Shown here: in pieces, positions 3,729 through 57,585 of the stretch
How the letters are laid out: every line of letters begins with the position of its first letter
How positions within the stretch are numbered: position 1 is the first letter of the stretch
Assembly (NCBI RefSeq): GCF_026571515.1
Contig: NW_026864517.1
Span: 1 to 64,000 of the forward strand
Direction: 5' to 3'
Length of the DNA stretch: 64,000 bases
From: Ruditapes philippinarum
Lineage: Eukaryota
Program-made: the position numbers and the translations under genes
The notes under the pieces: generated by a model
Database searches by the model: none
What the model was told of the DNA's origin: nothing
The model's input: the letters and a program-made list of their open reading frames with translations, nothing else

Positions 3729-6700
3729 TTAATACAATATTTCAGTTGAGAATTTGGCAACTGCGATAAAACATTGTATACGTATATTGTCATTAATATC
3801 AAAACTTGTGAACCCACTTAACATCTCTATAAGTTGGTTTTCAATGCTCATACCGCACAACATGCGGAAATAATTGTGTCCTAGTAAAGATATGAGTTTT
3901 GTCCATAGACTATATCTAATGTTATCATAATGTAAGCAATGAAACACTTTATGTAACGCATATTCGTATGTTACAGTCTTGCAATAGTCACAAACAACGG
4001 GATATTTTCTGTCGAAATATTTGCACATCAGTTTGAACAATGAAAAACATTGTGTTTTATAAACCGGGAAATGTCTTTGAAAAATCCATATAGAGCTGTA
4101 GTCGTAGGTGGAATGTGTATTTAAAAATAGGTTGATATCGTCATCGTGCTCTACTCTAGATTTCCAAGTACAAAGTACATGCTCGTGCACCGCATTTTTG
4201 GTTATTCTTTTCCATGCATATTTAGATGGAAAGAAACCTGTTTCTGAAAAGTCATGTAGATATGAATATAGTTTATATTTTCCAAGAACACTGATGACGT
4301 CGGGAATAAAGCCTTTAGATTTAGCAGGTCGTGCATAATATGATGTTAAACGATTAACAAAAATTTACTTAAACTTCATATAGGAATCTGCATGACATAG
4401 TTGGGACAAAAAGATAAGTTTTCTAATATCAATAAGGTTAAAAAATCGGATAAATCCCTAAACAACTGAGAGCAATGTTAGTACGAGTTCCATATGGAAC
4501 GCCTTGAATCCATTTGACGCATTGTCTATGTGCCCGTTCCAAGGGAAGTAACTGTGTCGCGGTGACACCGCTCCATAATTCACTCCCGTATAGAGCAGCT
4601 GGGAGAACTTTAGTTTCGTAGATACGCCTTGAGGTGATAGGGTTTAGTCCATTTTTCCCTATTCCACTGTTAGGTAAGCTAAAGAATGTTTTCCTAAGTT
4701 TATGGCAGCTTTCGGTTATGTTTTCGCAAAGGTTCATGTCATTTGTGCAAAGAATGTCTAGATGGGTATATGAGTTAGTTTCACTTATAATTTTATTTCC
4801 CATTTTCCATAGTCTTTTGTTGCTACATTTATCATTAAAAACGAGAACTTTGCATTTCGTTGCGTTATAAAAGTAACGTTCCTTTTTGGCATAATTGAAG
4901 CATGTATCTATAAGTTCATCGAGCCCTTTTTGACATTTGAAATGATGACCATATCATCAGCTAAGGTTGGACATGCACATACTATGTTGTGAATTTTATA
5001 GCTACTTTTACACATGTCAATCCTGTTCAGTAGCTCATTTATGAAGAGGATGTAGAATTGAGGACTACAACATTGTCCTTGACGTGTACCTTGCAGCACG
5101 GGAACCAGTCGGAGACAAATCCATTTGATTTTACACAACTGTAACAGTTTTCGAAGAACGAATTTAAATTATTTGAAACAAAGATATATCAATAACCACT
5201 TTGATACAGTTTTAGTAACAATGAAGAAATCCAAGTGTGATCGAATGCTTGTTTCGCATCTTAAAAACATGTATACATTGGAGAATTATTTTTTATGGAG
5301 TATTGTACACATTTCGCGAAGCATAAATGCTGTGATCAAACAGCTAACGTTTTTTTTTGAAAAACCACCTTGTGATGGATTTAAATGAAATGCCACCATC
5401 CATTTCTGCAATTTGTTAGAACGACCTTTTCGAATAATTTTAACAAGGCGGAACAAAGGGAGATAGCTCTGTAACTAGCTGGATCATTTGCTTTCGTTAC
5501 CTCCCTGAAATAAAACTGTTTATTATGCCTTTTTTCATATCTGTAGGTGTGTGTGAGAATTCAACATATGATTTGAAGAGTTTTGGTAATACATTTTATC
5601 GATAAATCTCCGCCACAAATGAAGTTTCTCATACAAGAGATTGTCTTGGACATAGGCTTTCCTTTTCTTGCAAGAATTAAGACGCTGTTTTTACCATATC
5701 GCTGGTGATTATGTATTTTGCATGTTGTTTGCTTCGATAAGTTACTTTTAATTGTTTCAAGTTCACCTTCTACATATGATTTGTAATCAGAATCAAAATT
5801 TTCAGTCATTATTTATAGAGTATAGTTGCGAGAAATAAGATTTCCAACCCTCGTTTACTTCCTGCGGATCTGATACAGTAATTCCATAGAAAGTCCATTT
5901 CAAAACCGGGTGTATATTTGGTTTTTGAATTATTTTTATTAACCAATCTCCAAAATTAATTGTTATATCTAATTCCGATGCTTTGTCTAGCATACATTCC
6001 TCTTTATCTAGGAAAGATAGAACGGATTGGCGATGTGTTTTCCGAAAGAGGGTCTTGGCTATTTTGAAACGTTTGTAACTTCCGGAAGTCGTGTCACGTG
6101 GCTTTCCGTCGCTTATCCATTGTGCTCGCGCTTGTGCGCAGCTTTTAGACTGTCATTCCAGTAAGGTTGGATTTACCTTAGGTATGAATAAATCTGTTGC
6201 TAGATTAACAATCACAACTATTCCAGAGTAAAGATCATCAATATCGGACATTTTTTTTTGCATCTTATTTGTTAAATGTAAAACATCACTATTTTCAAGG
6301 AAAGTCTTATAATCCTCGAGATTCTTTGATTTGACGTTGTGCCAGTTAATGACGTCTATTCGTTCTCTAGGACGTGTGCACTCAATTCTCGGAATTACAT
6401 ATTTGCACACAAGATGTCTGTGTGTAGAGACACATAGTGAATTGTCTTCTATAATTTCACATTGTATAAAGTTTTGTAATGAACATTCTGGAACAAAAAT
6501 ATGATCAATTAGTGTTTCTCTACATGAGTTGTAAGGAACATTGCTATATATACACCCTTGACACATAGATGATGTAGTTAAAGAAGTTAAATTATAATTA
6601 CTTATAATATCTAATAGTTTTAACACCTCTAGAAGTCTATAACTGTGTCAGAACTTCTTACAGACGGAAGTTCCGTATTAAAGTCACCCAAAATGATCAC

Positions 6701-7161
6701 AGTACCTTTACTGATAAATTTAGAAATGACGTTCTCTAATTCTTCGACATACGTTGAATATGACATCATAGAATGATTTTTACAAGGTAAATACACATGA
6801 ATGAGATAAACATAAGTTTCTGGAAAAGTCATAATTTGTATTCCTATATACACTGCTCCGAATTCAAGTCTAAAGATGCGATCATGTGATTTATGTCTTT
6901 TCTCCACATAAACGCTAAGCCTCCTTTTCCTACCTTTCTACGTGATAGGGTGTCCAGTGAAGGATCGGAAATTGCATAGCTAATTTAGTTAGTATTTATG
7001 GTGTCAAGAAAGGACATGTCAGCACGATGCAACCAGTGTTCTGATAGTCCGCATATATGAATATTTTGAGATATTAAAAGGTCACTTAAATAGCTAGCAC
7101 TAGACATAACGCCGTTCGCATTCCAAGTTGCAAAGTTTAATATTCGAGTTCCGGCTTCCAT
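3729..7161 (-). pseudogene. LINE ORF2 (APE endonuclease + reverse transcriptase), disrupted
   Basis: ORF-track pieces 6629-6907, 6153-6626, 5802-5993, 5561-5809, 4908-5138, 4438-4803 and 3729-4190 are collinear fragments of one EN-RT polyprotein. Confidence 0.88.
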
Positions 7162-7174
7162 GGTTACTTCAATT

Positions 7175-8400
7175 TTATTCTACATCGATATCTAGCACAT
7201 CAAATCTATTATAGTTCGTGTTGTACCTATGCCTGTTATGGCTTTTATAATCATTATGTTTGCTGTCCATAAATTGCATACTTGTGTTTGTACTTTCTAC
7301 TCTTTCTCGTTTACGATAATTATTCCCAGACACCCATGGTCGACAAATAATACCACGAGGCCAGAAGTAAGGGTCATCAGATAACATAGACGCGTTTTTG
7401 TCATTTTCAACATTTACGCGAACAACCGTAGTCCGTTTCTGCTTATTTCGGAAAATGGATATTTTGTTACTTTGGGTCCCTTTGATCTAATATAAGCTGC
7501 TACCTTCGCTTCCGTGATTTGTGCTTTAAAACCGCCAACGTAAAATCGTTTGGTGCGCATGCGTACATATTGAGAAAAATCATCAACATTCTCAGTTTGT
7601 TCACTGACCGCGTTCCAAATGGGATCACATTAAGGGTTATGTAGTACATTAATATTGTTAAAAGATCCTTCAGTATCTCGCGCAGTAGATAATTCCTGCT
7701 GTCGGTCTATTACACGACCGAGTTGATGCGTATTACAGCCGAGTTTGTTATCATTTCTTTTCACAGTTATATTGTTTTTTCTGAAACGTGGTGCAACATG
7801 TTCTTTGTGTTTTGGCTTACTTCTATCCGTTATAATACCGGTAGTATGGATCGGGTTTATGTCGGCAGGGGTTGCAACGTATGGAACATATGACATAAGT
7901 GGGGCATGCAAAGCCCGCTCTTCCGAAGCCCGAGCTTGGTATATAGGTTCATGCTTGATTGATGGTGGCATTGAGCCTATATCTGCCACTTTGCCGGATA
8001 GACCAGACTCGTTTGAAATGTTATAAACTATGCGCGTTTTAGCATTTTGAAATTTAGATGAAAGGTTAATCACCGATTCCTGTATTGATTTCAATTTTTC
8101 TTGATTCTGGTGTATATATGTTTTACACGCGCGTACATCATTCTCGATTTTGGACTCCGTCTCAATAAGGCGATTGTTGACATCGTTTGTCAATGATTTT
8201 ACACTGTTAATTTCTTTGTCTAACGTCTGAGACACTTCTTTTGCATTTTTATGTGCCGCATTCGTTGACGATTCGCTAAGCGTTAATGTCTGTTTAATCA
8301 TCACGATATCAGCTTGCAGTGCAGCGATGGTTGCCTTTAAATGGTTTAATTCTGCTCGGCATTGGCTGTGGTCATTACCGCCTGGAATTGATGGGAGAGT
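7175..8400 (-). pseudogene. LINE ORF1 remnant
   Basis: Coiled-coil ORF 7630-8304 plus a C-terminal FWPxG..RPW segment ending at 7175, 13 nt before the ORF2 ATG. Confidence 0.75.
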
Positions 8401-10749: not shown

Positions 10750-12837
10750 TGATGTTTCAACTTTTCACTATTTTAAGTAAAGTCGTTTGAAAAGTTCAAA
10801 TGTCTTTAAAAGAGATCTCGGGGAAACAGTTTTTAAAAACGGACAAACAGACCAACTGACAGAGACTCTGAGGATAAATCTTTAACATCTCTTGTTGTTA
10901 CAAGAATATAACATTTTTAAAAGCAAAATTCTTAAACGAAGAGAAGATAACTCTTGAAATAAAGATGCTAGACTTATGAACAATTTCTTACATCATTACT
11001 TTATTAATTAATTGATAACACCTACATGTATATGACTTTAATACATGAATATCTTATGATAAATATACTCGTATGATATGGATCTAATTGCAATATTTTT
11101 GCATAAACTACGGATGAAAAGTGGCTATAATTTCAACTGAAAGATATCATCACATCCATATTTAAATGTTTCATAGTAGTTAAAATTATCTCCCACTAAA
11201 ATTTAACATTGCTTATATGAAACACCTTTACATTTGATTTTCTTTTCATATAAATAAAGTTCATAAAATGCAAAATTAGAATGCAAAACACAATCAATTT
11301 CATTTCCTCATAGGAAAAATCAATGTACTAGGTAGTTAGAAACAAGTAGACCTTGTATAATATAAATTTCAAAGACCTTTATTTAAAAACGTGATATAAA
11401 ACTCCATGATAATTTGGAACGAAGCGGGATATTGTCAACATAATGAAAATATCATCCATAAATCATGTTAGATACAGTATCAAATACATGTACAACTCTA
11501 ATAAAAAATATTTACATGTGTGATTCCGCTTTACTTAAGGCAAAACCGCTTCGATTCAGTATATTGTGCCCACGAGCGTCAATACTGCGTGTATAGTTTT
11601 TGCCTGGAATATTTCGAATATCCAAAATGTAAGTATTTATTTTCTCCTTTTGAATGATTGTACATATGTAAAGTTCATAAACATATTGCAAACTTAGCAA
11701 AATGAAAGAAAGTGCATGTGTACATGTAGTTATTACATGATTCCCTACATTTTTGTTATAATTTGCTGAAATAAAACCATCTATTTCACGAAAAATGTCG
11801 AAATGAATAAATGAAATTATTTCTAGCAAGTGAAAATAGAAATAAAATCTTACATTATCTGCATGCAATTTACCAGGCAACAGATAGAATTTTAAGTTTT
11901 CATTTCCCGCACGTTATGTCTCGGAAACAAATAAAATTTTCCATCTTTAGAAAGGGCAAACATATAAGTTTTGTAATGTTTTAACATTGGTTTAAGAGCA
12001 TGTAAGATGTTTATTACCTGAAGAAAGTAGCGCTGAATGTGAAATCATTTGTCATAAAAAAAAGATGTTAACAAAATATGATACAGGTAATTGACCAATG
12101 AGTAACTTTATTGAAACTTCTCGTATAACTGGACATACAATATAAGAAGCTTTTGAGAAGTAGAAATAAAAGTATTTCTGGTTTTATTATTCCTGGGGCA
12201 TACTGGGGCTAGAATGAGAAAAATAAGCTCTATATTTCAAAAGATTGGCTTAAATTGTAATGGTTATTGGTCAGCAATTGATATTAGATATACAATTTGC
12301 CTTAAATATGAAAAAAGTCTGCCCAACTACTTTTTAATTTATAGAAATTTATGTAGGTCACGTGAACTATTGATTATTCCTGCGAGGTGGTTTATAAAAT
12401 TGAAAACAAGAAACAAAAATTATTTTGACATTTACTTGAATACTCAACATTTCCACTTGGGGGGACATAATGTCACATTTTATTCACCTTTTCGTTCATC
12501 CTTTATTCTATGCTTTTATAAAGCAAATATTTTTATTGTAAATAATTACAAAAATTTTTGGTGCGTGCGCGCACGAATGTACGTGCGTGCGCGTGTTATC
12601 TTGCATGTGTGTGTTTTTTTTTTTATAACAAGGCAACTTATATAGGCTTGCGTGCTAAAATTCTGCTAAAGCCTGTGTTGAAAGTTTATGCAATTTCTAA
12701 TTTGTTTTGTTTTGCATTAGTTTGGATTGCAGTCACAACTATTTTTATTTCTTTATTACTTTATGATGTTATCATCACCGTTGATTTTGTGCCTTATTTG
12801 TTAAAACAACTACTATGACTTACAGTTTTAATTTCAG

Positions 12838-15437
12838 GAAATTTGTTGTGATTTTGGTAATATTGTTCGTTCCATATGGTGATGCAATGCACTCTCAACA
12901 CCAAACTTTATACAGTAGACACATAGGAGGTAGAAGAAACTATTTCCCACGTTTTTCAAATGATTTACTGCCATTTACACAACAAACAACAATTAGTCCG
13001 CTAGGTACAACTCCTGATATTTTAATGATAAGTGAAGCCGAAGAAAATTTGACAGCTGAGAAAGGCATAAAAATTCCTCCTCATGACTGCATCATTTCAT
13101 GGGACCAGTTAAAAGAGCATGTAAGTTAATTTTGGGATCATCAGAAATGTTTATATTCGATGTCGCCGCAGTGCTATTTTTGTAGCGTGTTCGGCCGCCA
13201 ATTTCTTCTTTATCGGTCAATCCATCCATGAAAAAGTTGCATGTTAAGCAAGAAAATATCTCTCCTAAAACGGAACCGATTATAATAGTCACTCTACATG
13301 TAATTCTTAAACAACACTTCCTTTACTATGGCTCGTAACAAATAATCAAGACTAATTTTGGTCCATTGAGCGCAACATCCAGGCATGAATGTCATTGTGA
13401 AGTAACTAAAATACATTTCTTTTTTTTAAGATTTGTGATTGTATGTTGCAAATTGCAAACCTAACTTGAATATTTGTGCAAATCAGTACGCAAAAGTTTC
13501 ATTCCAAAGGTTGACCTTCATGCTTAGTCAAATGTACGCGTATTTATAATTGCTTGTCTATTCCATCGACATTGCAAACAGGAACAGTCAGGATCTATGA
13601 CACTGTGAGAGGCAAAAGTTATATCAAAATGAAACAACCCCAATGAGTTTTTATTTACAAATACTAAAATGATTTATTGTTTTGCTATACAGTTTCAACA
13701 TAGATCAAAATCACAATATACAATGTATGTAACATGATCAACATCATTACATAAATAATGTCAATTGTGTTTTACTTCAAACATTTTTAGATAAAACAAT
13801 AATAATTATAGCTATACCTACTAAAACAGATTGCAGATGTTAATTACATAGGTATTTATGATCTTGATGACGATGACGACGTGTTTCCGGGAAGAGGTTT
13901 CAAAAATCACTTACGTCTACAAGTCTTGAATGAAACATCAATACGTAGAGAAGCAGGGGCATGGTTTGTATATTTAAATTTCTTTACTTCATTAAATTTA
14001 CAATAGCGTTGAATGGATGTTTTCATAGGCACTTATGGATATAGGTATTTTGTTCCTTTGTTTCGTTTTAGAATAGCTTAAAATAACGTTATAGCGTAAC
14101 GGAATCCTGCCGCCCTCTAAGGTACCTAATTCCGCTTGGATGAAGAGAAAATTCTAATTGACATTAGCAATTACTTTGATTATAATCAAACTTTGGACCT
14201 CTTGATACAGAAGCCCTTGTCCTACGTACTACTGGTCCACTGTGACCTTAAAATATTTTTCACAATTTATCTCTATTAAGGTTCCCATCATTCAACACTT
14301 GTGGATCTGTTTTTGGGATAGACGAACGTGTGGATGGTGCGAAAGCTATATTCCGTCCAGTATCAGGTACTAATATTTTTGTAGCAATGGTCCATCAACT
14401 TCATTTGACATTTGTTTACCCGAAAAGCATTTATTAATTCTAACCCATTTGAACGCACTTCATTTCATTTCCCATCTCTTGCTTGATTTGCTCGATTGTT
14501 TCACACTATATTCTTATAATTTCTAAATAAAACATCTTGTTATTTTCAGGTAATGCATTCATTGTCCCTGGAAAAAGAGACTATATCGTGAGTTTGAATC
14601 CAAGCCGATATATTTTCTATTTCTTCTGTCAGTCAGAACCGCAAGATAACAGATGCCGAGACGCACTTCTTATACTTCTGGTCAAGGTTAGCTATGTTGT
14701 CATTATTGCTCGAAATATTATTAACAACTCGGGAGAAACGGGTATCTTCGTAACATGTTAAATTATTGAGTAAGGGGGCGAGTTTGGCAAAAAAAGTATT
14801 TTGGGTTTCTTTATATGAAAAATTCTTTTCTAAGCCAAATATTTTTTATAGTAATTAAATGTGGTCCATGAAAATTTTTTACCCCATGACACAAATCATG
14901 AATTTACATTGGGGTCGTTTGTTTTTTTTCCTTTGGGTTTTTAGGGAAAATTTATTTTAAAATTTAATACATTTACATCAAAAAAGTAAAATGCTTGGAT
15001 GTTTAATTTTAGGATGAGAGAGAATGGCCTAGGGAAGGTGATGGTATTCCTAAAGGTCAAATTCGACTAGATGATATTCCCTGGGGAGAGATTGGTTCAA
15101 CACTGATGGCATGTTTTGGTCAGCAATTCATTGATGACACTGATCCACAAATTAAATGGGGTTGGACAGGCCCTGGTATAATAAATTATGATACCACTTT
15201 TATCATGTTGATAGTTTAACAAATATTAGGAAATTTGGATAATTCAATATATTTTCAATGGTTACTGTAAAGGCTGTTGAATAAACATTAATTAAACTAT
15301 TCGTTTATATCTATGAGATCCATAAGGACTATGACAATGTCATTAAATTTGAAAACGTTTTATAATTGGTTTATCGCTTTCTTTCAGAATGTGCAGTGCC
15401 AGGGTCAGAGGTTTTCGAAAAAGCAATTATGAAATAA
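12838..15437 (+). CDS. Secreted divergent lipocalin-like (RBP4/ApoD-like) protein, paralog 1; ATG-containing first exon not located
   Basis: GT-AG exons 12838-13120, 13830-13963, 14281-14366, 14550-14686, 15013-15175, 15388-15437 (internal intron phases 0,2,1,0,1) splice into an open frame. It reads: signal-like KFVVILVILFVPYGDA ... IPPHDCIISWDQLKEH|IADVNYIGIYD...NTC...DYIVSLNPSRYIFYFFCQSEPQDNRC...LDDIPWGEI..CFGQQFIDDTDPQ..W.W..E|CAVPGS..stop. It is collinear with the minus-strand paralog. AATAAA at 15714-15719. The gene itself is high confidence; the lipocalin call is moderate. Confidence 0.85.
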
Positions 15438-17059
15438 TTAGCTGATGACATTTTAAGGTAAAGCCAAGCAGCAGCTAATGGTCGGAATAGATTTCTGTCA
15501 TATACTTTGCTCACATGAATATAATTGTACTATTCAATGCACATGTGTTTACTTTTATTGAATATATATCTAACAAGAAAAATATTACATACATTCGTAT
15601 GTAATATAGGTACGATTGCATACTACTTTATGTTTGCTGAATTAAAGGTGTAATGTAAAATGAACAAACATGTCATGAGATATTTTATATCTTTAAACAT
15701 TTTCATGGAATGTAATAAATGTATCATCATATTAAAGTTGCATGCCTTCCGATGAGAAAAATGATTTCAAGGAAATCAAAATATGAAAAGAAAATTCACG
15801 GTCAATTGACTGCTTTGAAGCATAATCACAAATTTGAGTCACAGATTTGAGATATGATTATTTATTCATATTAACATCATTATTGGTTATATATTGATAA
15901 AAAAAACCCGAAAGACACAGTTTGTAAATATTTATTACAATTAAATATGAAAAAGGTATTTTCTATCCTATGCGACGCGCCGAGGTTAGCTATAATTAAA
16001 ATTACCGCGCAAAGTCGCGGTGGTGCTTGGGATAATCACTTGATACTGTAAATGGCAGCCATTTTACGATACGAAAATGCCTGGCCCTCCTCGGACAGTT
16101 TATCCTGCCGAAAAGATATGAAAAAATACTTGCAATTCAAAGTTTGTTTATCACATAAAGATTATCGATTTACTCTTTGCACACTTTTTCTATGCCTGAT
16201 TGTAATTATATTGATGTGTTTTCATTGGCTTAAACCATCACGTTACCAATACACATGTAGGTGTGAACTAATTTCGTGTTCATTAAAATTATTCCGTTAA
16301 TAGACATATAACAATCTTATTTACAAATGAATTGATAAAACAACAATCACAGAAGCATTTAAGATAATAACAATCATTGGAACAAAATAAATGCATATAA
16401 ATTGTAAATTTGTGTATGACAACTCACCCCCTAAACAAAACATAATAGACTCAACCAAAACAAGCGCCTGCTTCTTCACCTAACTATGTAGTTGCATGAC
16501 CATGATTAGCAATATAGCAAACCAAATCTAAGAGATAAACCTATTGTAAAAATAATACTATGACCACAGCAGATTTCGTACAGAAAAATATTTGCTTTTA
16601 TTGAATATATGTTTAAAAATATTTGTTTAATAGATATATTTGTTAAAAAATATTGGGAATTCGTGGACATAAAATTTCGTGATTTTGTCAAAAATAACAC
16701 TTTTTTCATAAATTCGTGGATTGTTAGAAATATAAATCAAAGATAAAATTCACAGAAAAATAAAAAGCAGATAATGTTATGCAAAATAGTGTTACCGAAA
16801 ACGAAATGAATTTTGTTGGATCTATCGATGAAAACCGACGAACAGCTCTTACATAGTTTGGAATACATCAGCAACCAGCTAGGTTATTTAATTATCCAAC
16901 AACCAATTAACAACCTACCAAATTGACACTCGCAAGTTTTGAGTATATTTTATAAAATGCATCACTCATTCCGCTTGTACATGTATGAAGCAGTACATAT
17001 GACACGTACAATGTTTTTTACTAGTTTTAGAATATCAAAATTCTTTATCTTACATAAGG

Positions 17060-19680
17060 TTAACTTGATCATCACATTTATAAATTATGGGTCAGTGAAG
17101 TTCTAGTATAGCTGCACAGAAAGCTTAAATTCATATAAATATATGCATTCTTTTTACAAACATGGGTATATATGTTATCAAATATAAAAAGAAAAAATGA
17201 CGAGTCAAATTCAGTGTCTTAGTAGTAAGTGTTTACAGTTTGCAAGGTTGATTCAATCTCATAACAAGAAGCATCTTTCAAAAAGATACTCAGCTGTGGT
17301 CGTCATTTCTTAGTAAGTTTTGCGTTAGTTCTAAGCACTGATTTAATAAAAAAATACCGTGTTCTAAGTCGGAATAGATTATGAATTTATTAATGTTCTG
17401 CAGAATTATTATCAATAACTTAAAGTTGTAGCAAAATTATCATCTTCGACATATCGCTGGTGACGGGCGATTCTTTGCTACCGACTGAATTTATTTTGGG
17501 TGGAAATAAAAATATGTAACTATAATTACAGGCTAATCGTAGGTCATTTGAATATTTTACCGATGTATTTTTCCATTCAGGCGTAATCCATGGGCTATAT
17601 CTGAAACGATCGCACGCGGATAATGGTACTCTTAAAAGGCGTCTTGGCAGTCTCGTGGCGCTTGTGAAATGCTTAAAATAACCAATGAAAATCCTACTTT
17701 TTAGCAGTTAATCACTGAAAATCATCCTGGCTCTAGACAGCCTCCGGTTGGAAAAAAATACAAGAGAATTAGATTCAACTGACAAATATTAAATCTAACT
17801 AAAATCATGCTTGTTTTTGCCGAATCGTTCTTATTTCGTTTAAAATAATTTTAATGTTTTACACACTTGTTGACACGTTATTTACTTCTAAGACAAATTA
17901 GTTTTGACAGAACAGTATGTAAACATTGTGGACAAGCCACAGTCGCCCTTGGTGTGTAAGAGTTGTAATTATACCCGAGTGCATAGACATGTACCAACCC
18001 TTACAACCTGTCACCCCATACAACCATACATATCTAAATATGGAACTCGGATATAGGGTTTTTGTATACTGTGTCCGTTATATCAACAATCACTTGTCAA
18101 TTTTACAACCATGCGAAGCACTTTATATAGCTGCCTTGTTACAACCAACAGTGGCAAAGCCCGACATTTTGAATAAGGCAGTATCTCATCCTAATGTAAA
18201 TATAATAAGATATAAGAACACTTTATCCTAACTAAATCACAAAATTCAATAGGTTGTTATTTATGTTACCTGATTGACTACCTTAGATGTCATTTAAAAA
18301 AATAAACATTAAATACTACATGATTAATCAAATAACTGCATTAAATTAAAGTAATGAGTTTAAAAATAAAATAATATTACATGTATGAAGCCAAAAACTG
18401 GAACACAAATGTTACTATTTTAAGAACAAATTTTTTTTTTTAAAGAAATGTGCATAAATTACTGGAATACTATGTACACACCAAAAATGGCCGGTTTTAA
18501 GACTTTTCTGGTATAAATTGTGCATACATATGCCTTCAATTTTTTTAGACAGCGGACTCTAAGAAACAGAAGTATTTTTTTTGAGAATTTAACCAAACTT
18601 ATTCACCATATATATCTTCCCACAAGTAAAAATAATGGATCCTCTCTGTAGATCATATATTTTAATCTATACAAGAGGTAATTTCTTTTTCTAAAAACAT
18701 TTTTCTTTTTAAACTTCAGTTTCTGTGATATTCCTAAATCTAAATCAAGTTATAAACTAAACAGGGTGACTACAGTCCATGTTTCATATTTTCTTTTCTG
18801 TTTAATATTGACTGTAATTCTCTCTTCACAAGTTTATTCTTGAATTCACGATTAAGTGACATGTGTATAAACAAATGTGCAATATGTTAGCGAAAATCTA
18901 GATTCCTATAGGCAAAGATCAGTACTCATTTATTTAGACTTAAACGTTTTAATGATTTATTATTATAATTCAAATTATGTAAACTTTTCATTGTAGATAT
19001 AGAGAACGGCTTAATTACAATGTAACAGTATTCTTGAAACCAATCAAGCTTGAAAATTTCAAAATTATTGTGCATTTGTTTATTTCAAATGTTGGTAAAG
19101 GTATGAAAACCATCCAAAGAAAACTTAGGTGCCTATGTGCATTATCTCTGGCACCAGTATATAGAACTTACCTACCATATGCAAGGTGTATAACTTTCTC
19201 ACCTGAAAGAATTTGTCCTACTTTACCTTATCCGACAACAGGCCACTTAATTGGCCATCCAATTCAAAAAATTATATTTGTATATTGCTTGTATAACAAT
19301 TGTTAAGTCGAATGACTGAAAACAACTGCTGAAGTTAATCTATTGAAGACAGCTGTTCAATACATGTATCTTGTAAGTGAATGTTTTATTTTATTTCATA
19401 TACATATATTTCCCATGTGCATTAAGTAACAGACATTTTCTGTTAAAACTCTCTCTAGATATGATCACCAGAATGTGAAAATATCAGGTAATTTATTTTT
19501 ATACCTGTACATGCAGTGCCTATAAGGCTGTAAAATATACAAATAAGAAAACGAACACATTATTTATCTATTCTAATAACAATCAAAAGTTTATTCTATG
19601 ACAAAAAGTACATATAGATGAATGTTTTCTACCTTGAATAGAAATTTATACACAAAGAATTTGCATCCAAATTGAAAATG
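17060..19680 (+). repeat. Low-copy segmental repeat, copy 2
   Basis: Collinear with 33150-35990 and, with deletions, ~2530-3190. Shared anchors include GGGTCAGTGAAGTTCTAGT and AACAACTGCTGAAGTTAATCTATTGAAGAC (copies 2 and 3), and CCACAGTCGCCC and AAAACTTAGGTGCC (all three copies). Confidence 0.85.
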
Positions 19681-20912
19681 AAGTTGAAATCGTGAATTCG
19701 TGAAATTGAAATCGATAATTTATGAAGCTGAAATGTCAGAATAAGTGTCCTTCACTTAGTACAAATTTACAATTAACACTTGTGTCGCATGAAGACCAAA
19801 CAGTATTTGAGCTAGGGTCATGAAACTTTATGCATATGAAGTTGTGTAAATTGGTTATCGATTGTGCCACATTTATGCCAGAGTTATAGCCCTTTACTAA
19901 GTCAAAATTAGGGATTTTCAACTTGTCATCCGTGTTGTTGACAATAAACGGTAAATATAATTATGCAAAACGGGCTTATTTAATTAAGTAAAAGAAAAAA
20001 CACGTGTGACGTATACTTTGGTATTTTCATCTTTATGCGCATTTTTGGTAAGTGACAAATACGTTTTGGTGAGCATAGAAAAACTCAAACCAACCGAATT
20101 TGGCACATTTTATGTTCCATTTTGGGCTGGAGAGTGCGCCATATTCCACCGTATATGTCACACGTATGACAAATTCGAACCGAACACTATTATGTCACAC
20201 GTGTGCCATAATATATATACGCTTCGTGACATATATAGCCCGACAAAGCTGGTGTCAGGGGACGTAAAGGATGCTGCACTTTTATTTCAATTATCCTTCA
20301 TGAACAGTCTCGATCAAACCGAGTCTGCAATTTCATGTAATTTTATTGTTTTTATTGCTTCCGAAAGATCACTCCTAAACCAGATGTTTTTTATGTTAAA
20401 AGATTTTGATCTTGAGCGTGGATGTCTTTTATCTTTATTTTTGAATTTGAATTATTTTGTATAGTTGGTCGTTCATTCATTCTGCTCAGATGTTCATTCG
20501 TTCCCACCCGGGAATCAAACCCGCAATGTCGAGCGCACTAACCGATTGATCTATGCGGGCTGGTACTACCTTGTGTGCAGTATATAATTTATATAAGTGT
20601 CTTTAAGTGTTAGTTTTTCGAAAGGCAGTTATTATTATACAATTGATATAAAACGTGAAGGTCGTCATGAGACTTGTATAGTGCACCTAGCTTTAAAGGC
20701 TCAAAATGACATGAGGCATATAATATTGATAACTATGACAAAAGCAGGCATAACGTCAAATTCTAGGTCAAGTTAACCATATGTATCCAAGTTGCGTGCA
20801 CATAATCTAAATTTAAAGTTCATAGCTGTAGCTCTCATTATAAACAATTATGTCACTGGGATGTAGTAGTCACCAACATTTACTATTAAACAACAAAACA
20901 CAATGCCATGTC

Positions 20913-22769
20913 AAACAAGGGTGCCATAGTCACAAAATACGCCCGTTTACGAAAATTTTAGATGAAGATGGGGGCATTATGGATAAGTGTTATATAGCAA
21001 GCAAGTTTTTATTCTTGGCACTGTGTTGTTAAATGAACTTTAAAACAAATCAGTAGGGAAGATATGCACAGGATGTGTAACCTTGACCTTGGTCGCGCGG
21101 ACCTGAATTTTATGCACGGCACTCAGCCTCACAATGATGAACATTTGTGCCAAATTATATTGAAATCCCCCTATGCATGTAGAAGTTTTGCTCCAGACAA
21201 GCGTTTTTCTATGAGCTCTAATTGTGACCTTCACCTTTGACCTAGAGACTTGGATTATGTGCAGGGCACTACGTCTCATGGTGGTGAACAATTCTATAAA
21301 GTAACATTAAAATTCCTCCATGCATGTAGAAAATGTGCTCCGGACAACATCTGGATATTTAATCATCTCTAGTGACCTTGACCTTGCAAATATTAACCTA
21401 AATTAAATGTGTCACACCTGTAGTCATGATTGTTACCATTTGTGCTACAATCCATCAATAAATGATGACTAAATGGTCCCTATACACATCTTCAAATTTT
21501 TATCTGAACTTTGACCTCTATGTGTAACCTTGACTTTGGTCGCAGGGATCTAAATTTTTTTCGTGCGACACTCAGCCTCACAATGGTGAATATTTGTGCC
21601 AAGTTATATTGAAATCCCCCTATGAATGTAGAAGTTTTGCTCTGGACAAGCGTTTTTCAATGAGCTCTAAGTGTGACCTTGAGCTTTGACCTGGAGACCT
21701 AGATCATGCATGGAGCAATACATATCATGGTGGTGAACATTTCCATAAAGTATTATAAAAATTCTTCCATACATGTAGGAGATATGCTCCAGACAAAATC
21801 TGGATATTTTACCATCTTTAGTGACCTTGACCTTGCATATATTGACCTAAAGTACATGTGTCACAGCCGTAGTCATGATAATGACCATTTGTGTTACAAT
21901 CCCTCAATAAATGATGATGAAATCGTCCCTATACACATCTTCATATTTTTTATCTAAACTTTGACCTCTATGTGTGACCTTGACCTTGGCTGCAGGGACC
22001 TGAATTTTGTGCGCGACACTCCGCCTCACAATGGTGAACATTTGTGCCAAGTTATATTGAAATCCCTCTATGCATGTGGAAGTTTTGCTCCGGACAAGTG
22101 TTTTTCAATGAGCTCTAAGTGTGACCTTGACCTTTGACCTAGAGACCTAGTTCATGTGCGTGACATGGCTTCTCATAATGGTGAACATTTCTATGAAATT
22201 TCATTAAAATCCCTCCATGCGTGTAGGAGATATGCTCCGGACAAAATCTGGATATTTCATCATCTTTAGTGACCTTGACCTTGTATATATTGACCTAAAT
22301 TATATGTATCACAGCCATAGTCTTGATAATGACCATTTGTGTTACAATCCCTAAATAAATGATGACTAAATGGTCCATATACACATCTTCATATTTTTAT
22401 CTAAACTTTGACCTCTATGTGTGACCTTGACCTTGGCCGCAAGGACCTGAATCTTGCGCGCGACACTCCGCCTCACAATGGTGAACATTTGTGCCAAGTA
22501 ATATTGAAATCCCTCTATACATGTGGAAGTTTTGCTCCGGACAAGCATTTTTCAATGAGCTCTAAGTGTGACCTTGACCTTTGACCTAGAGACCTGGTTC
22601 ATGTGCGCGACACTGCTCCTCATAGTGGTGAACATTTCTATGAAGTTTCATTAAAATCCCTCCATACATGTAGGAGATATGCTCCGGACAAAATTGGACG
22701 CCGCCCGCCCGCCCGACCGCAAGGGGCGTTCCCATAATACGTCCCGTTTTTCAAACGGGCGTATAAAAA
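20913..22769 (-). mobile_element. HINE-like element with ~448-bp higher-order satellite array
   Basis: subTIRs ATACGCCCGTTT (20937-20948) and AAACGGGCGTAT (22753-22764), IR 22737-22749, and a short (CCCG)n tract. CCTCACAATG recurs at 21127, 21576, 22024 and 22471; each unit consists of three diverged ~149-bp TGACCTTGACC-containing subunits. Confidence 0.82.
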
Positions 22770-23444
22770 GGGTCACAAAGTCAAAATGTAGGTTAGCTGA
22801 TATCTAAGTTAAATTCTACATTTGTACATTATAAAGTTAAAATTCTTATACAAAAAAAGTTGTGACTTGATCAAAATTAAGGTCAACTGTTTAAAATGAT
22901 AAATGTAACGAAAATCTTGTTGAAATGCATATTTAAAGATATACAGTGTACTTGTAAACACTTCATGGTGTTTTATTTCTTGATATATCCGTTGCACTTG
23001 TGTGCAGGATTTTGTTACTTTTTAGACATAATTTTGACTAACCTAGTCTGAAATACGTTCCTTTTTCACACAGCTGTCTCTCACAATTATAAGCAATTTA
23101 TTTCATTCAAGTTTATAAGGTTATTGTCAGGTTTTGTGAAAACATCTTAATTCTACGTGGACTTCTTAATAATATTTTCCACTTTTGGTTATGTTTCATA
23201 ATAAGCTATGATATATAAATAGAATAATAATAAAAAATACAAAAAAGCCATTTGTTGTATTAATGTAATTTTATTAATTGGCAAATTATCAACCGACTTA
23301 CATATCATATCTTTATTAAACCATCATTACTTCACTTGAATTAATAAATTTTGAGAATGTGATGAGGATATTATATTCCCTTTTAATAGAATAACTGAGT
23401 GATTAAATAATGACAATAAAACCACGACAGAAACTGACGATATC

Positions 23445-26400
23445 CTATGTGCCCATGACGGCTTCATTGTAAACATCAGACCCTGGAACTGCACATTCTA
23501 AAAATAGATAAATATGACGTCATCACTAACAAAGACTTATACGATAAATACATGTGTGACATTAAGATGTGCTCTAGAAGCCCAAAAACTTAAAAAGAAT
23601 TATTTCATCGCCAGAATAGATATTTACCCTAAAGTTTTAATTGATACTAGTATTCTATAACCAGGCCATCTATCAAATAAAAACATTTTTTCTAGACAAA
23701 ATTTATAATGATTAAAAAATAAGCTGAGTGTGTGAAAAATAACCTTTTAAAGATATTCTGCTTTAAAACAATACATCTTTCTAGCAGCAAACCTTATTTA
23801 TAATTAAATGTTTGACAAAATTAAGAACATAAATCATTGCACGATGCCAAGTGCTAAGAACAACATACAGAATGAAATCACAATGATTTTTATTAAGTAA
23901 AATGAAATTAAAAATTAAATTACAAATAGAACAAAGATATTTCAATGAATTTTGAAGTCCCTTGGGTAAGGTCTTTTTATATCTAAATATATTAATTGTT
24001 TAACCTTAGAGATATCATTGTTAGAGATGTAAAGTTCTACGCCTTAAATTAGCAGAAAAATGTCTATTCTTCCTGAATTCTTAAATGAACTACTGAGATG
24101 TTATAAGGACCACTCGCCTGTATACGTAGGGCGTCGTCATATTATTATAAATATAGTCATACAGTCGATAAGATCTTTTTAACAATATCTTTTGTTTGTT
24201 TAAATGACTACCATTAGTCATTGCTTTTAACATTCCATTCTAAAATAACCATATGGTCAGCAAAACCTTATGGCACTTTCTTGAAAATATGTAAAAAAAA
24301 AAGATCATAAATTCATATGGTATAAATTATCGGACAAGAAAAGTTTTCTTTGTTATATTCACCTTTTCCTCTCCATGTCCAAATTGCTTGTGGGTCAGTA
24401 TCATCGAGAAACTGTTGACCAAAACATCGAATCATTGTCCTCTCTATATCTCCCCATGGGATGTCATCAAGGTTGATTTGACCTTCAGGTACGCCATCGC
24501 CATCTTGTGGCCAAGATCTTTTGTCCTCAAAACCATTATTAGTAAATTGGTATTATTGTAATATTAAACAAAAAAATCTTACGTATTGTGTATCGTGATT
24601 AAATTTCTTATTTATCGAATCTGTGATACTTATTTGATGATATGAAAAGAAAATTATATTTCAGTTGAATCGAACAGACATGTAAATATGCAGTGTTAGA
24701 ATTTTTTACGTAATCAAACCAAAATTAATCATATTTTATATGTTACTCGGAATAGTTTTAAGAGTTTTTAATCTTTAGAATGTCATGTTTGAAATGTGAA
24801 TCATTCGAATATGAGAAAATAGATCTAGACTTTACAACAGGGCGTGGATTATTCAATGTATTTATAAGACATAAACTTAATATTGACCAACCTCTACTAA
24901 AAGTACATTTAATCCTTGAGAACATCTACCGTCCATGATTGTATCCCCCGTATAGCAGAAGAAATAGAACAAATATTTGCTAGGGTCTGAACTGACAACA
25001 AAATCCATTCTTGTTGGACTGACGGTAAAACCTTAAACAATGTAGCGTATGATTAATCATTCCAATCAAGCAATGTAAAAAACAACAGTTCACAACTACG
25101 CAAATGAGGATTTTCACATCTAATGTGTTCGTTAGTACGCCAATGAACGAGTTAGTGTCATAAAATATAAACTTCTTGTTGGCAATATTTATAGGAATTA
25201 TACTCATGGTATCATTAATTTTAGATATCCAGTCTTTGCTTGACCAGTTCTGGTCAAATCTGCAACTAAATGATAGAATAAATAGAATAATAACACAATT
25301 GGTAAACCAGGAAAACTTTACTCTTAAGATACTAACCTGAAAGAGCACGGAATATTGCTTTTTCACTGTCGACGCGCTCTTCTAGTCCAGGTACATAGGC
25401 ACAGGTATTTGTATCATCAATCCTATGATATGATAATATATAATATTTGTATAATAGAGTACACGCATGTGTGAAACCTAAATTGTTTTAATGAAAATAC
25501 TCTGTTTTCCTCATTGCTAGTGATCCATATATGAATCTATACATATATCCATACATGAATCTATACATATATCAATACATAACTCTACACATATATCCAT
25601 ACATGAATCTACACATATATCCATACATGAATCTACACATATATCCATACATGAATCTATACATATATCCATACATGAATCTATACATATATCCATACAT
25701 GAATCTACACATATATCCATACATGAATCTACACATATATCCATACATGAATCTACACATATATCCATACATGAATCTACACATATATCCATACATGAAT
25801 CTTTACATATATCTATACATGAGTCTACACATATATCTATACATGAAACTACACATATATCCATACATGAATCTACACATATATCCATACATGAATCTGC
25901 ACATATATCGATACATGAATCTACACATATATCTATACATGAGTCTACACATATATTCATACATGAATCTACACATATATCCATACATGAATCTACACAT
26001 ATATCTATACATGAATCTACACATATATCTATACATGAGTCTACACATATATCTATACATGAGTCTATACATATATCCATACATGAATCTATACATATAT
26101 CCATACATGAATCTACACATATATCCATACATGAATCTGTACATATATCCATACATGAATCTACACATATATCCATACATGAATCTATACATATATCCAT
26201 ACATGAATCTACATTTATATCCATACATGAATCTATACATATACATGAATCTACACATATATCCATACATGAATCTATACATATAGCCATACATGAATCT
26301 ACACATATATCCATACATGAATCTACACATATATCCATACATGAATCTACACACATATCCATACATGAATCTATACATATATCCATACATGAATCTACAC

Positions 26401-29400
26401 ATATATCCATACATGAATCTATACATATATCCATACATGAATCTACACATATATCCATACATGAATCTGTACATATATCCATACATGAATCTACACATAT
26501 ATCCATACATGAATCTATACATATATCCATACATGAATCTACACATATATCCATACATGAATCTATACATATATACATACATGAATCTACACATATATCC
26601 ATACATGAATCTACACATATATCCATACATGAATCAACACATATATCCATATATGAATTTACACATATATGCATACATATACTCAAACATTCATCCATAC
26701 AGTTAGAATAACCTTAATAAAAAACATTATCCAACAAATTGAAAAAAGACACATTTTCACAATTGAAAAATTGCTAATTTTGCTGATCAATAAAATTTAA
26801 CATTCCTTTTCTTAGCACTTATGGCGTATCAATAAAATGTGAAATATAAAATAATATATTATCTTACCTTAAACTTAAATCTCTTTTAATAACTGTGTCA
26901 TTCAAAAGGCTATATCGCAGGTGAACTTTTGTTGTCATCCCGGAAATAAACATTTCGTTGTCCGATATATCATATAATTCAATATAGTTCTTCCCAACAA
27001 CCTAAAAATAGTTGTTGTATTTCAATCAAATTGTGAAAATCATTTAAAATATACATACCGTTAAGTTTTTAAAGAGATTCCAATGATATCATTACAGACA
27101 AAAAAACAACAAGTATGTCAGCACTGCAGCCTCAAATCTCCAAATAAATGCATAAATGCGATCATCTAAAATATATTTCCGTAAATTTTTATTTCTGCAT
27201 GATAATTATAATGTTACCATTTTTTTGGCATTGTAACATTAGTTGGCATTTCTAAAGGTCAACGTAATCATTAAAATCTTTCATCACACAAATAATACAA
27301 GAAATTATCTTGGATGCATCTGATACAGTTTGTAATATTCGTTATGATTAAATCATTTAAAGATTACATATGGAATTGAAAATAATACAAACGTGATTTT
27401 TAAAGTCATCCCATGATAGAATACAATCTTGTGCAGGAATTTTCATTCCAATGTCATCGGCTAATTTATCGTCCTCGTCACTAACCATCATTACACCTGG
27501 AGTAGTGGTCGACATGGTTGTTGTAGAATACGACAGGAAAAATGGCGGGAAATTTAGTGATAAAGGCGGGAAGCTGTTACGTTCCTTGCTAAAGGCATTA
27601 TGTCTACCGTTACAAGAGGAAACAAACAGCAGACCGAAAATCACTATTATTTGTCTGGAAAACAAGTAAAGGCGCAATGAAAAGAAAAATAAGAAGGATT
27701 TGGAGATAATAAAAGGTTTAACAAACTATACAGTTCTATGGTCAAGTTGTCATGCAATTAATATCGGGGATCTAGACTTTACGTGACTGTCATTTAGTAT
27801 TTTCAACAATAAATACATGTGCATTTATTTATCAACACTATTTGTAACAAAAAGTTACGTGCTTGAATAAATTCTTAAAGTTATTAAGAACATGTTCATG
27901 TATCTTCATAACTTAACAGGGAGTGCCGCAATATTTAAACTCATGGTGACGGTTTCAAAATATGATCACTGATTTCATGGAAAAGTAGGGAAAACACATT
28001 ACTGCGATTGAGTATGGGATCTCTTGGATATCAAAATCCGGTAAAAAAAACACGAATCTTTCAACAAATGTAACTGCTTTCGTATATAACATGTATTGAT
28101 ATAAAGAAATAAAAAAAGGGGAAAATACATTACAATCGTGAGTATTTTGTATTTATCCTTCCAAACATAGTTTATAAAATTTGTTTTATCCTTGTCATGT
28201 ATGTACTTTTCTATTAAAAAGATAAATATTTAACACTAGAAATAATGCTTTCGTAACGAAAAGCATTTGATTTTGTCATTTTGATGGCGGTTGCGGCTAA
28301 TATATCAATACATGTATTTTCATCTATCTTTATACAAGCCACAACATTTACAATTAAAATTCGTATACGCCTTAATTGATAGGTAAAACAGAGTAAACAT
28401 TGACATGCGCATAGCAATACTCTAAATTAAAGTATAAACATATAATCTTCAAATTTTGTGTTTTATCCACTGAATACATTTAAATTGTAAAAACTATCAC
28501 TCAATTGAGATCAAAGTAAACGAAAGACAGGAAAACGAAAGAAAAAGATGACGCTAGCTGTGGATCGTTCACCAGAGGCCTATGGCTAAAATGTACAATT
28601 AACACGATTTCACCAGGTGACGCTGGTGACCAATTTTGATCCAAGTGGTCGTCTATAACTTTTGTAGCTGATCGTTAAGTAATGCTACAAGCAAAATATC
28701 TAAATACAAGCCAATTTTAACTATCTAAGCTCAATGTGCATTATTGTTTGGAGTGAAAAGTTATTTACATTCGCTTTTACTTAGTATTAGGCAGTTGACT
28801 TGGTGGGGCCATTTATGATCCCATGGTTATGACTGATGAAAAGATATTTTTAACTTTTCAGCACCTCTGACCTACTAATGCAAATGACTGGAACTACATG
28901 TATTTATATAACTTTTGAAGAGGGTCACCTTAGGATCATTCCAATATAGTGTGGTAAAAATCCGCTCACCAATTTAAGTAGTATACGAAATGACAGACGA
29001 CGGGCACACTGCCATCATAAAAGCTCTGTAGGAGCACATTTGTCTCGGAGCACATTTGTCTTACGTAAGACCGATGCGGTCGCATTTGTCCCACATGAGA
29101 CAAATGCGACCTCAAATGTCTACCCCAAAAAACTCATTTGTGTGACCAATGTGTTCCGATCAAGTTTTTTAAGGGACAAGAAAGCACATTTGTCTCATGT
29201 GTTTTTTAGGGACAAGAAAGCACATTTGTCTCATGTCATTTTTTATGAATTATTTGTCACATATTTCCCCATGGCAGAAATTCTTTTTTAGAATCGAGGT
29301 TCGCAGTTTTACCTCAAGTTTAATCATCAATAGGGTTGCTTATGCTTTCTTTATGAAAACCTGCAGTGAACTATTGATTACAATATCTCTAATTCAAGAA

Positions 29401-30009
29401 ATTGATTGACTTAACCTGAAGGCGTACACTGAAACATACTAAATCCCGTTCACGATGGTACAATGGTGACAGCGCGATGGCACGATGGTACGTTGATGAA
29501 AACGCGATGGTGCAATGGTGAAAACACAATGGTACGAACGTGAAACAACGATTGTACGATGGTGAAACAACGATTGTACGATGGTGAAACAACGAAGGCT
29601 CGATGATGAAAACGTGATGGTACTATGATGAAAGACGATGTTACGATGGTGAAAATACGATGGTACAATATGATGAAACTGCGATTGCATGACGATGAAA
29701 ACGCGATATTATTTTCACTATCGTGTCATCGCATCGTCTTATTTTTCCATGAATCACTTAAGGGCCTCCGTGGCTGAGTGATTTCAAAAAACCACTTACC
29801 CCTAAACGCTATAGGTTCGACACATACACGGGGCGTCGAACTATTCATGCGAGGATCCCGGTCAGGGTCCAAATGCGGAATACATATGCGCGTGCGCACG
29901 TAATAGTATTGCGTGGCCACGGAAAAGCTATTGTGTGCGCACGTAATAAATAAGAAAATTCTATGTCCCCTTTATGTCACCGTAGATACTACCTTGTCTC
30001 TAGTGCCAT
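23445..30009 (-). CDS. Secreted divergent lipocalin-like (RBP4/ApoD-like) protein, paralog 2, ~284 aa
   Basis: Exons 30009-29993 (putative, ATG GCA CTA GAG ACA AG|gt, phase 2), 27654-27393, 27001-26868, 25422-25337, 25031-24892, 24525-24363, 23497-23445 total 855 nt of open frame. It reads: MALETRQIIVIFGLLFVSSCNG ... IPAQDCILSWDDFKNH|VVGKNYIELYD...NTC...DFVVSSDPSKYLFYFFC...C...LDDIPWGDI..CFGQQFLDDTDPQ..E|CAVPGS. Exon sizes 134, 86 and 163 are identical to paralog 1. Minus-strand AATAAA at 23317-23312. Confidence 0.85.
25523..26700. repeat. 24-bp minisatellite (~49 copies) in an intron of paralog 2
   Basis: Unit ATCCATACATGAATCTACACATAT repeated with few variants. Confidence 0.97.
29034..29262. 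repeat. GCACATTTGTCTC-repeat element fragment
   Basis: The CACATTTGTC motif recurs about 6 times; the inverted motif GAGACAAATGTGC occurs at ~30326. Confidence 0.55.
29450..29740. repeat. Degenerate ACGATGGTGAAAAC-type tandem repeat
   Basis: Multiple CGATGGTGAAA(A)C units, including exact 21-bp repeats around 29540-29593; a related relic lies at ~30945-31065. Confidence 0.75.
29762..29865 (+). mobile_element. SINE 5' fragment (same family as 48300-48549)
   Basis: GGGCCTCCGTGGCTGAGTG..CCACTTACCCCT..GGTTCGA..TTCATGCGAGGA. Confidence 0.55.

Positions 30010-38438: not shown

Positions 38439-57585
<19,147 letters not shown>

Follow-up and report, generated by a model that had tools for sequence, protein, structure and literature searches.

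Divergent 'outlier' members of the lipocalin superfamily, recognizable by structure alone, are already known from insects, ticks and plants. The arthropod outliers are salivary effectors of blood feeders, a role with no ecological parallel in a filter-feeding clam. Among the better-known lipocalins, RBP4 docks to TTR and STRA6, and the third disulfide of RBP joins residues 120 and 129. The other two disulfides have been placed at 4-160 and 70-174 in structure 1RBP (PMC5487895), and the introns of canonical metazoan lipocalin genes have the phases 0,2,1,1,1 (PMC3184775). Here we analyze a stretch of 64,000 nucleotides from the Manila clam, Ruditapes philippinarum (contig NW_026864517.1, positions 1 to 64,000), referred to as the window. 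An earlier note, made from the DNA sequence alone, had proposed that the window holds a tail-to-tail pair of cryptic lipocalins belonging to a lineage-specific outlier family. Our fold models, Foldseek searches, gene structures and the RNA junctions of one of the two genes support this proposal. Genes A (+ strand, 12815-15437) and B (− strand, 27677-23445) are very probably two convergent paralogs of a lineage-restricted, expanded, putatively secreted and highly divergent lipocalin family of venerid clams.

Full-length sequences for the Pfam searches, the alignment and the folding were those of public proteins (P0001 for gene A, P0026 for gene B, P0019 and relatives), and our own exon models were searched exon by exon. 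The AlphaFold2 model of P0001, built on an alignment of 12 sequences, had a predicted local distance difference test (pLDDT) score of 73.8 overall and of 85-96 in the core, with a predicted template-modeling (pTM) score of 0.73. That of P0026 reached a pLDDT of 82.9 and a pTM of 0.83, with the same topology. In both models DSSP assigned a short helix, eight beta-strands forming a barrel, and then a 12-residue helix; in the P0001 model the first 45 residues are disordered and a C-terminal tail follows the helix. All 73 Foldseek hits with an expectation value (E) of 1e-3 or lower were lipocalins. A search independent of Foldseek, covering 48,161 chains, returned lipocalins at every rank from 1 to 41, with a clear gap to other barrels. 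In a feature search of the ESM Atlas, the named top clusters were all lipocalin families (VDE, Lipocalin_10, Lipocalin_2 and PF00061), with scores of 0.85-0.90 that we take as leads only. The calycin-barrel fold, which the earlier note had set as a check on its proposal, is what both models and these 73 Foldseek hits returned.

At the sequence level, the Pfam family HECW_N (PF16562) appeared below threshold in two of six family members (E 0.002 and 0.018; 15.5-18.7 bits against a cut-off of 26.7), and a family profile also matched 2lfe_A (HECW2) at E 0.71 over the stretch ...DWIGIY.ID.D. Taken at face value, these matches would make the N-terminal half of the protein a SKICH/HECW_N-like beta-sandwich and not a part of a lipocalin barrel, a reading that we find scarcely credible. 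The matches stay below threshold, span about 30 residues and are absent from the other four members, and the stretch in question forms strand A of the barrel in both models. Since the fold searches returned no HECW or SKICH structure, the HECW_N match was treated as noise. The weak resemblance to the HECW1/2 N-terminus, which covers residues 49-93 of P0001 and 78-110 of P0010 around ...SWD.FK.H....WIGIY.ID.D, is probably a chance similarity of one beta-strand motif.

Exon frames and splice sites of both genes were read directly from the window DNA, and a tblastx comparison of 12-20 kb on the + strand against 20-31 kb on the − strand gave six collinear exon pairs. Each gene has six exons, and the two stop codons face each other across 8 kb; the public proteins share 50% identity across 228 aa (E 3e-88). 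Exons 2 to 5 measure 134, 86, 137 and 163 nt in gene A and 134, 86, 140 and 163 nt in gene B, and the last exon 47 and 50 nt, respectively, plus the stop codon. Intron phases are identical in the two genes (0,2,1,0,1) and every intron is bounded by GT..AG. The matching exon sizes and phases claimed for the pair are thus borne out by splice reading and tblastx.

Exon 1 of gene A (12815-13120) carries the ATG, encodes a hydrophobic leader, a linker rich in Thr and Pro and the first cysteine (Cys1, in the motif DC-I), and ends at a phase-0 GTAAGT donor. Exon 2 (13830-13963; phase 0 to 2) starts with IADVNYIGIY at the position of structurally conserved region 1 (SCR1) and encodes strands A-C and a conserved N-x-T sequon. 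Exon 3 (14281-14366; phase 2 to 1) holds Cys2 (NTC) and strands D-E, and exon 4 (14550-14686; phase 1 to 0) the SLNPSRY region, Cys3-x8-Cys4 and strands F-H, ending in ...ILLVK. Exon 5 (15013-15175; phase 0 to 1) encodes Cys5 (CFG) together with the main alpha-helix and the long loop that follows the barrel. Exon 6 (15388-15437), which was placed by splice reading and RNA contigs, encodes Cys6 (ECAV) and a C-terminal helix and ends in the TAA stop (15435-15437). The gene had previously been begun at 12838, where there is merely an acceptor-like CAG whose AG lies within the codons F-R. The ATG lies at 12815, and protein P0019, encoded by a near-copy of gene A, begins in the same way (MTYSFNF); RefSeq starts P0001 at the second Met of the gene, 12887.

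Gene B follows the same plan on the − strand. Its exon 1 (27393-27677) has a TTG at the position of gene A's ATG; a hydrophobic stretch resembling a leader comes next, then a linker rich in Thr and Cys1, and the exon ends at a phase-0 GTTTGT donor. The remaining exons are each supported by tblastx, splice reading and RefSeq: exon 2 (26868-27001), starting VVGKNYIELY; exon 3 (25337-25422), with Cys2; exon 4 (24892-25031), with SSDPSKY and Cys3-x10-Cys4 and ending in ...VLLVE; exon 5 (24363-24525), with Cys5; and exon 6 (23445-23497), with Cys6 and a TAG stop at 23447-23445. Most of intron 2 is taken up by a 24-nt minisatellite (25523-26678; 48 copies, 92% matches), from which spurious open reading frames (ORFs), some as long as 393 aa, arise on both strands.

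The same genome carries canonical ApoD-like lipocalin genes that match PF08212 above the cut-off (at least three at G000:C10351:62938-80615, and a further locus at C5739:176388-179513), whereas the window genes do not match it at all. In the canonical gene on C10351 a phase-0 acceptor lies directly before YLGDWYEV, and the two exons that follow measure 125 nt (to phase 2) and 89 nt (to phase 1), compared with 134 and 86 nt in the window genes. Introns 2 and 3 are found 39 and 68 residues past the Trp-equivalent in the window genes and 37 and 67 residues past it in the C10351 gene, so that the first three introns agree in phase (0, 2, 1) and, within two residues, in position. Three introns conserved in both place and phase argue for common descent with ordinary lipocalins. 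Of the 0,2,1...1 pattern originally read from the window, the first three phases and the final phase 1 stand, but the fourth intron is of phase 0. Further differences set the two groups apart: the canonical clam genes have an undivided last exon where the window family has two further introns, they retain the GxW and TDY motifs and the SCR3 Arg, and their cysteine pattern is another one. Like them, the window genes would encode a secreted barrel protein, and the D...Y.....C spacing of the SCR2 region can be aligned by eye without gaps.

The signature motifs themselves do not occur in their literal form. At SCR1, the start of exon 2 reads D-V-N-Y in gene A and G-K-N-Y in gene B in place of G-x-W, and the same column in relatives reads G-R-N-W, K-P-W, M-D-W or K-E-W. 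Among the 13 family proteins and the genome paralogs, Trp occupies this column in P0003, P0010, P0021 and P0024 and in the copies on C5773, C14517, C7681 and C12770. Its presence in many paralogs indicates that the signature Trp is ancestral in the family, with G-x-x-W spacing, and that Tyr took its place in A and B. The loss of GxW proposed by the earlier note therefore holds for both window genes, with the corrections that the replacement is Tyr and not Asn, and that several paralogs retain the Trp. For SCR2, gene A has S-L-N-P-S-R-Y and gene B S-S-D-P-S-K-Y; agreement with the canonical clam gene is limited to the Asp, which B and most relatives have, and to the spacing of the Tyr and Cys that follow. 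In the SCR3 region an invariant Arg stands three residues past strand H (D-x-R), and the Lys at the end of the strand is Glu in gene B.

Six cysteines are conserved in an alignment of 13 family members, in the order DC-I, NTC, FFC-x8-C (A) or FFC-x10-C (B), CFG and ECAV, exactly as had been listed before. Along the modeled chain, Cys1 precedes the short N-terminal helix, Cys2 opens strand D, Cys3 closes strand G, Cys4 comes directly ahead of strand H, Cys5 ends the main helix and Cys6 sits in the C-terminal tail. This arrangement, with each cysteine on the secondary-structure element expected from RBP, would allow an RBP-like pairing of the N-terminus with the helix, of strand D with the C-terminal tail and of strand G with strand H. 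One member, P0010, lacks both Cys3 and Cys4, a joint absence that fits a Cys3-Cys4 bond. RBP4 and RBP/PTGDS-like lipocalins have six cysteines in the same order, similarly spaced in plasma RBP, and two of them lie close together on either side of the G-H hairpin (C-x8-C in gene A). Furthermore, the last cysteine of the clam family coincides in the alignment with the C-terminal end of the RBP chain, and RBP4 shares the phase-1 intron in the codon before the last cysteine.

These likenesses raise the question of whether the family is the protostome counterpart of RBP4-like lipocalins, that is, a secreted carrier on an RBP-type three-disulfide scaffold that would transport retinoids, carotenoids or bilins in clams and whose exon-5 module would dock a receptor or carrier partner. 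We regard this as unlikely. Identity to RBP4 is about 10-12%, with no detectable sequence homology, and the clam proteins differ from it in a Thr/Pro-rich N-terminal extension of about 50 residues, in about 13 additional residues linking strand H to the helix, in the Tyr that replaces the SCR1 Trp in A and B and in the phase 0 of the fourth intron. Nitrophorins and the Rhodnius amine-binding protein score as well as RBP, so that specific orthology with RBP4 cannot be claimed. With the arthropod outliers, namely the Rhodnius nitrophorins and biogenic-amine-binding protein and the histamine-binding proteins of ticks, the clam proteins in turn have no sequence similarity.

Several observations weigh against placing the two genes among the lipocalins. 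No Calycin-clan family was hit in Pfam at E≤10, either with ten single-exon peptides or with six full-length relatives; a family profile run against PDB sequences found no lipocalin, only noise at E 0.71 and 2.2; and BLASTP of exon 4 of A and of B against the canonical clam lipocalin exon gave no alignment. None of the SCR1, SCR2 and SCR3 motifs is literally present, the last two introns have phases 0,1 with the fourth of phase 0, against the canonical 1,1, and the leader is absent from both RefSeq models, gene B in the window having no ATG for it. The alignment behind the models, moreover, is shallow, with 12-13 sequences that come from two species and one transcript. The lack of any Pfam, PDB-sequence or BLAST similarity to a lipocalin, the shallow alignment and the standing of the ESM scores as leads would also suit a secreted, Cys-rich clam family with no relation to lipocalins, whose models resemble them through convergence of fold or an artefact of prediction. 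This we judge to be quite improbable: both models have high-confidence cores, 41 consecutive lipocalins stood clear of other barrels in the Foldseek-independent search, three introns are equivalent in position and phase to those of a canonical lipocalin of the same genome, Trp occurs at the SCR1 position in many paralogs, and the order of the cysteines is RBP-like. The fold, intron, Trp and cysteine lines of evidence are independent of one another.

As members of an outlier lipocalin family, the two genes would encode a leader, a disordered Thr/Pro-rich linker of about 50 residues, an eight-stranded up-and-down beta-barrel and a C-terminal alpha-helix. The linker is probably O-glycosylated, and the proteins would be secreted. 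The family would have descended from ordinary metazoan lipocalins, its sequences drifting below detection by Pfam or BLAST. Judging from the modeled barrel, the most likely function would be to bind or carry, outside the cell, a small ligand of hydrophobic or planar character held within the barrel, and the unusually conserved post-barrel segment encoded by exon 5 may clamp the structure or offer a surface to a binding partner.

Gene A yields correctly spliced transcripts and evolves under purifying selection. Its exon-5 peptide, used as the query of an exhaustive phmmer search, led to P0001 (XP_060567033.1, 'uncharacterized protein LOC132725865 [Ruditapes philippinarum]'), which is identical to our splice model. 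All five junctions occur at the predicted bases in contigs of the runs X1, X2 and X3, of which X1 is on record as RNA and X2 and X3 are only guessed to be RNA: 13120>13830 in X3, 13963>14281 and 14366>14550 in X1 and X2, 14686>15013 in X1, and 15175>15388 in RNA contigs. The exon model thus agrees with the RNA junctions, a mismatch with which had been named in advance as grounds for abandoning the proposal. A short X2 contig joins 13963>14550, skipping the 86-nt exon 3 with a shift of frame, at a depth similar to that of the exon-3-including contig of the same run. A near-copy of gene A lies on a 2.7-kb contig (G000:C14774:1-2718); its protein, P0019, has 91% amino-acid identity, and the copy represents either a haplotype that has diverged or a gene duplicated very recently. 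Between gene A and this copy the synonymous divergence (dS) is 0.128 and the nonsynonymous divergence (dN) 0.036; the resulting dN/dS of 0.28 indicates purifying selection.

The status of gene B is less simple. The public protein P0026 (LOC132725890, RefSeq, on the same public contig) uses exactly the junctions of our model, and NCBI annotates it as protein-coding. Of the two intact multi-exon ORFs with signal peptides claimed at the outset, that of gene A stands, with an ATG ahead of a hydrophobic leader as a putative signal peptide; in gene B the reading frame is intact only from the leader onward, and a TTG takes the place of the start codon. The hydrophobic leader after the initial Met looks typical in gene A, P0019 and the Mercenaria relatives, and in gene B it follows the TTG (codon 27677-27675), which aligns with gene A's ATG and with the Met of those relatives (MRL...). 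No in-frame ATG precedes the internal Met at 27515, which comes after the leader and from which the 232-aa RefSeq model starts, without a leader. A second copy of gene B exon 1, as a second allele would provide, was searched for in the assembly and none was found; the stretch is single-copy. We rejected as unsupported the hypothetical 17-nt first exon that had been suggested upstream (30009-29993, − strand; ATG...AG): its GTAGTA donor is weak, the RefSeq model leaves it out, and it is one of 102 combinations of an ATG with a phase-2 GT in the 3.8 kb upstream, no better than chance.

Because the ancestral start codon reads TTG, gene B, intact from exon 2 onward, is either a very young pseudogene, poorly translated and unsecreted, or a gene served by a 5' exon yet to be found. 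Gene B may have been inactivated only recently, leaving a pseudogene, or it may be a remnant that is not secreted, in place of a second working lipocalin; this is a real possibility, although we lean slightly against it. The TTG exactly at the start shared by gene A and the Mercenaria proteins, the first in-frame ATG falling after the leader, the single copy of exon 1 and the failure of the proposed upstream exon all speak for inactivation. Against it, the six exons contain no stop or frameshift, every splice site and all six cysteines are kept, the protein model is more confident than that of gene A, NCBI lists the gene as protein-coding, and the TTG may be allelic or due to faulty assembly, or else the start may be supplied by a real 5' exon.

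Exon 5 is the best-conserved part of the family (63% identity between A and B), and at least 17 matches to it were found on about 11 contigs of the 1.4-Gb R. philippinarum assembly, some of which may be haplotigs, with clusters on C7681, C5773 and C11982. The hard clam has at least seven family proteins. In a search of 1.84 billion proteins and in word-index searches, the relatives found beyond R. philippinarum were Mercenaria mercenaria proteins and one transcript only. A word-index protein search with P0003 returned the query itself only, and a literature search on the locus names found nothing. The phmmer matches P0002 (Mytilus 'MGAM') and P0012-P0018 were set aside as low-complexity or bacterial repeats, not relatives. 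All named Mercenaria mercenaria relatives are 'uncharacterized', none having a functional name. The earlier expectation that motif searches would leave the family uncharacterized thus agrees with the blank Pfam result and with the NCBI label.

Other features of the window lie outside the two genes. The 8-kb spacer between their ends contains a 448-bp tandem repeat (21073-22698; 3.6 copies, 88% matches, internal period about 147 bp), and a 22-nt repeat is found at 29481-29707. Several ORFs of 120-224 aa without Pfam hits at 4438-8304 (− strand) look by eye like retroelement remnants. SIN3-type co-repressor exons occupy 47300-48349 on the − strand (Pfam Sin3_corepress at 47990-48349, E 4.6e-32, continuing in 47300-47701). 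The gene to which they belong probably spans about 36-56 kb, a region whose strongly negative GC skew fits a long − strand gene.

The family described here is a new, Pfam-invisible member of a well-known superfamily, and its recognition is a solid re-annotation rather than the discovery of a protein of a new kind. Clam genes that are now blank in annotation receive from it a fold and a likely functional class. It also indicates that exon-intron structure and cysteine pattern can expose a lipocalin missed by profile hidden Markov models, and suggests a new family for the Calycin clan. A putative RBP-like disulfide scaffold in a mollusc bears on the origin of RBP/PTGDS-type lipocalins. Should the unlikely RBP4-like role prove true, RBP-like retinoid or pigment transport would reach outside vertebrates and might be linked to shell or tissue pigmentation in the Manila clam. 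As an expanded set of putative secreted ligand-binders in bivalves, these proteins are candidates for pigment handling, immunity, detoxification and chemical communication.

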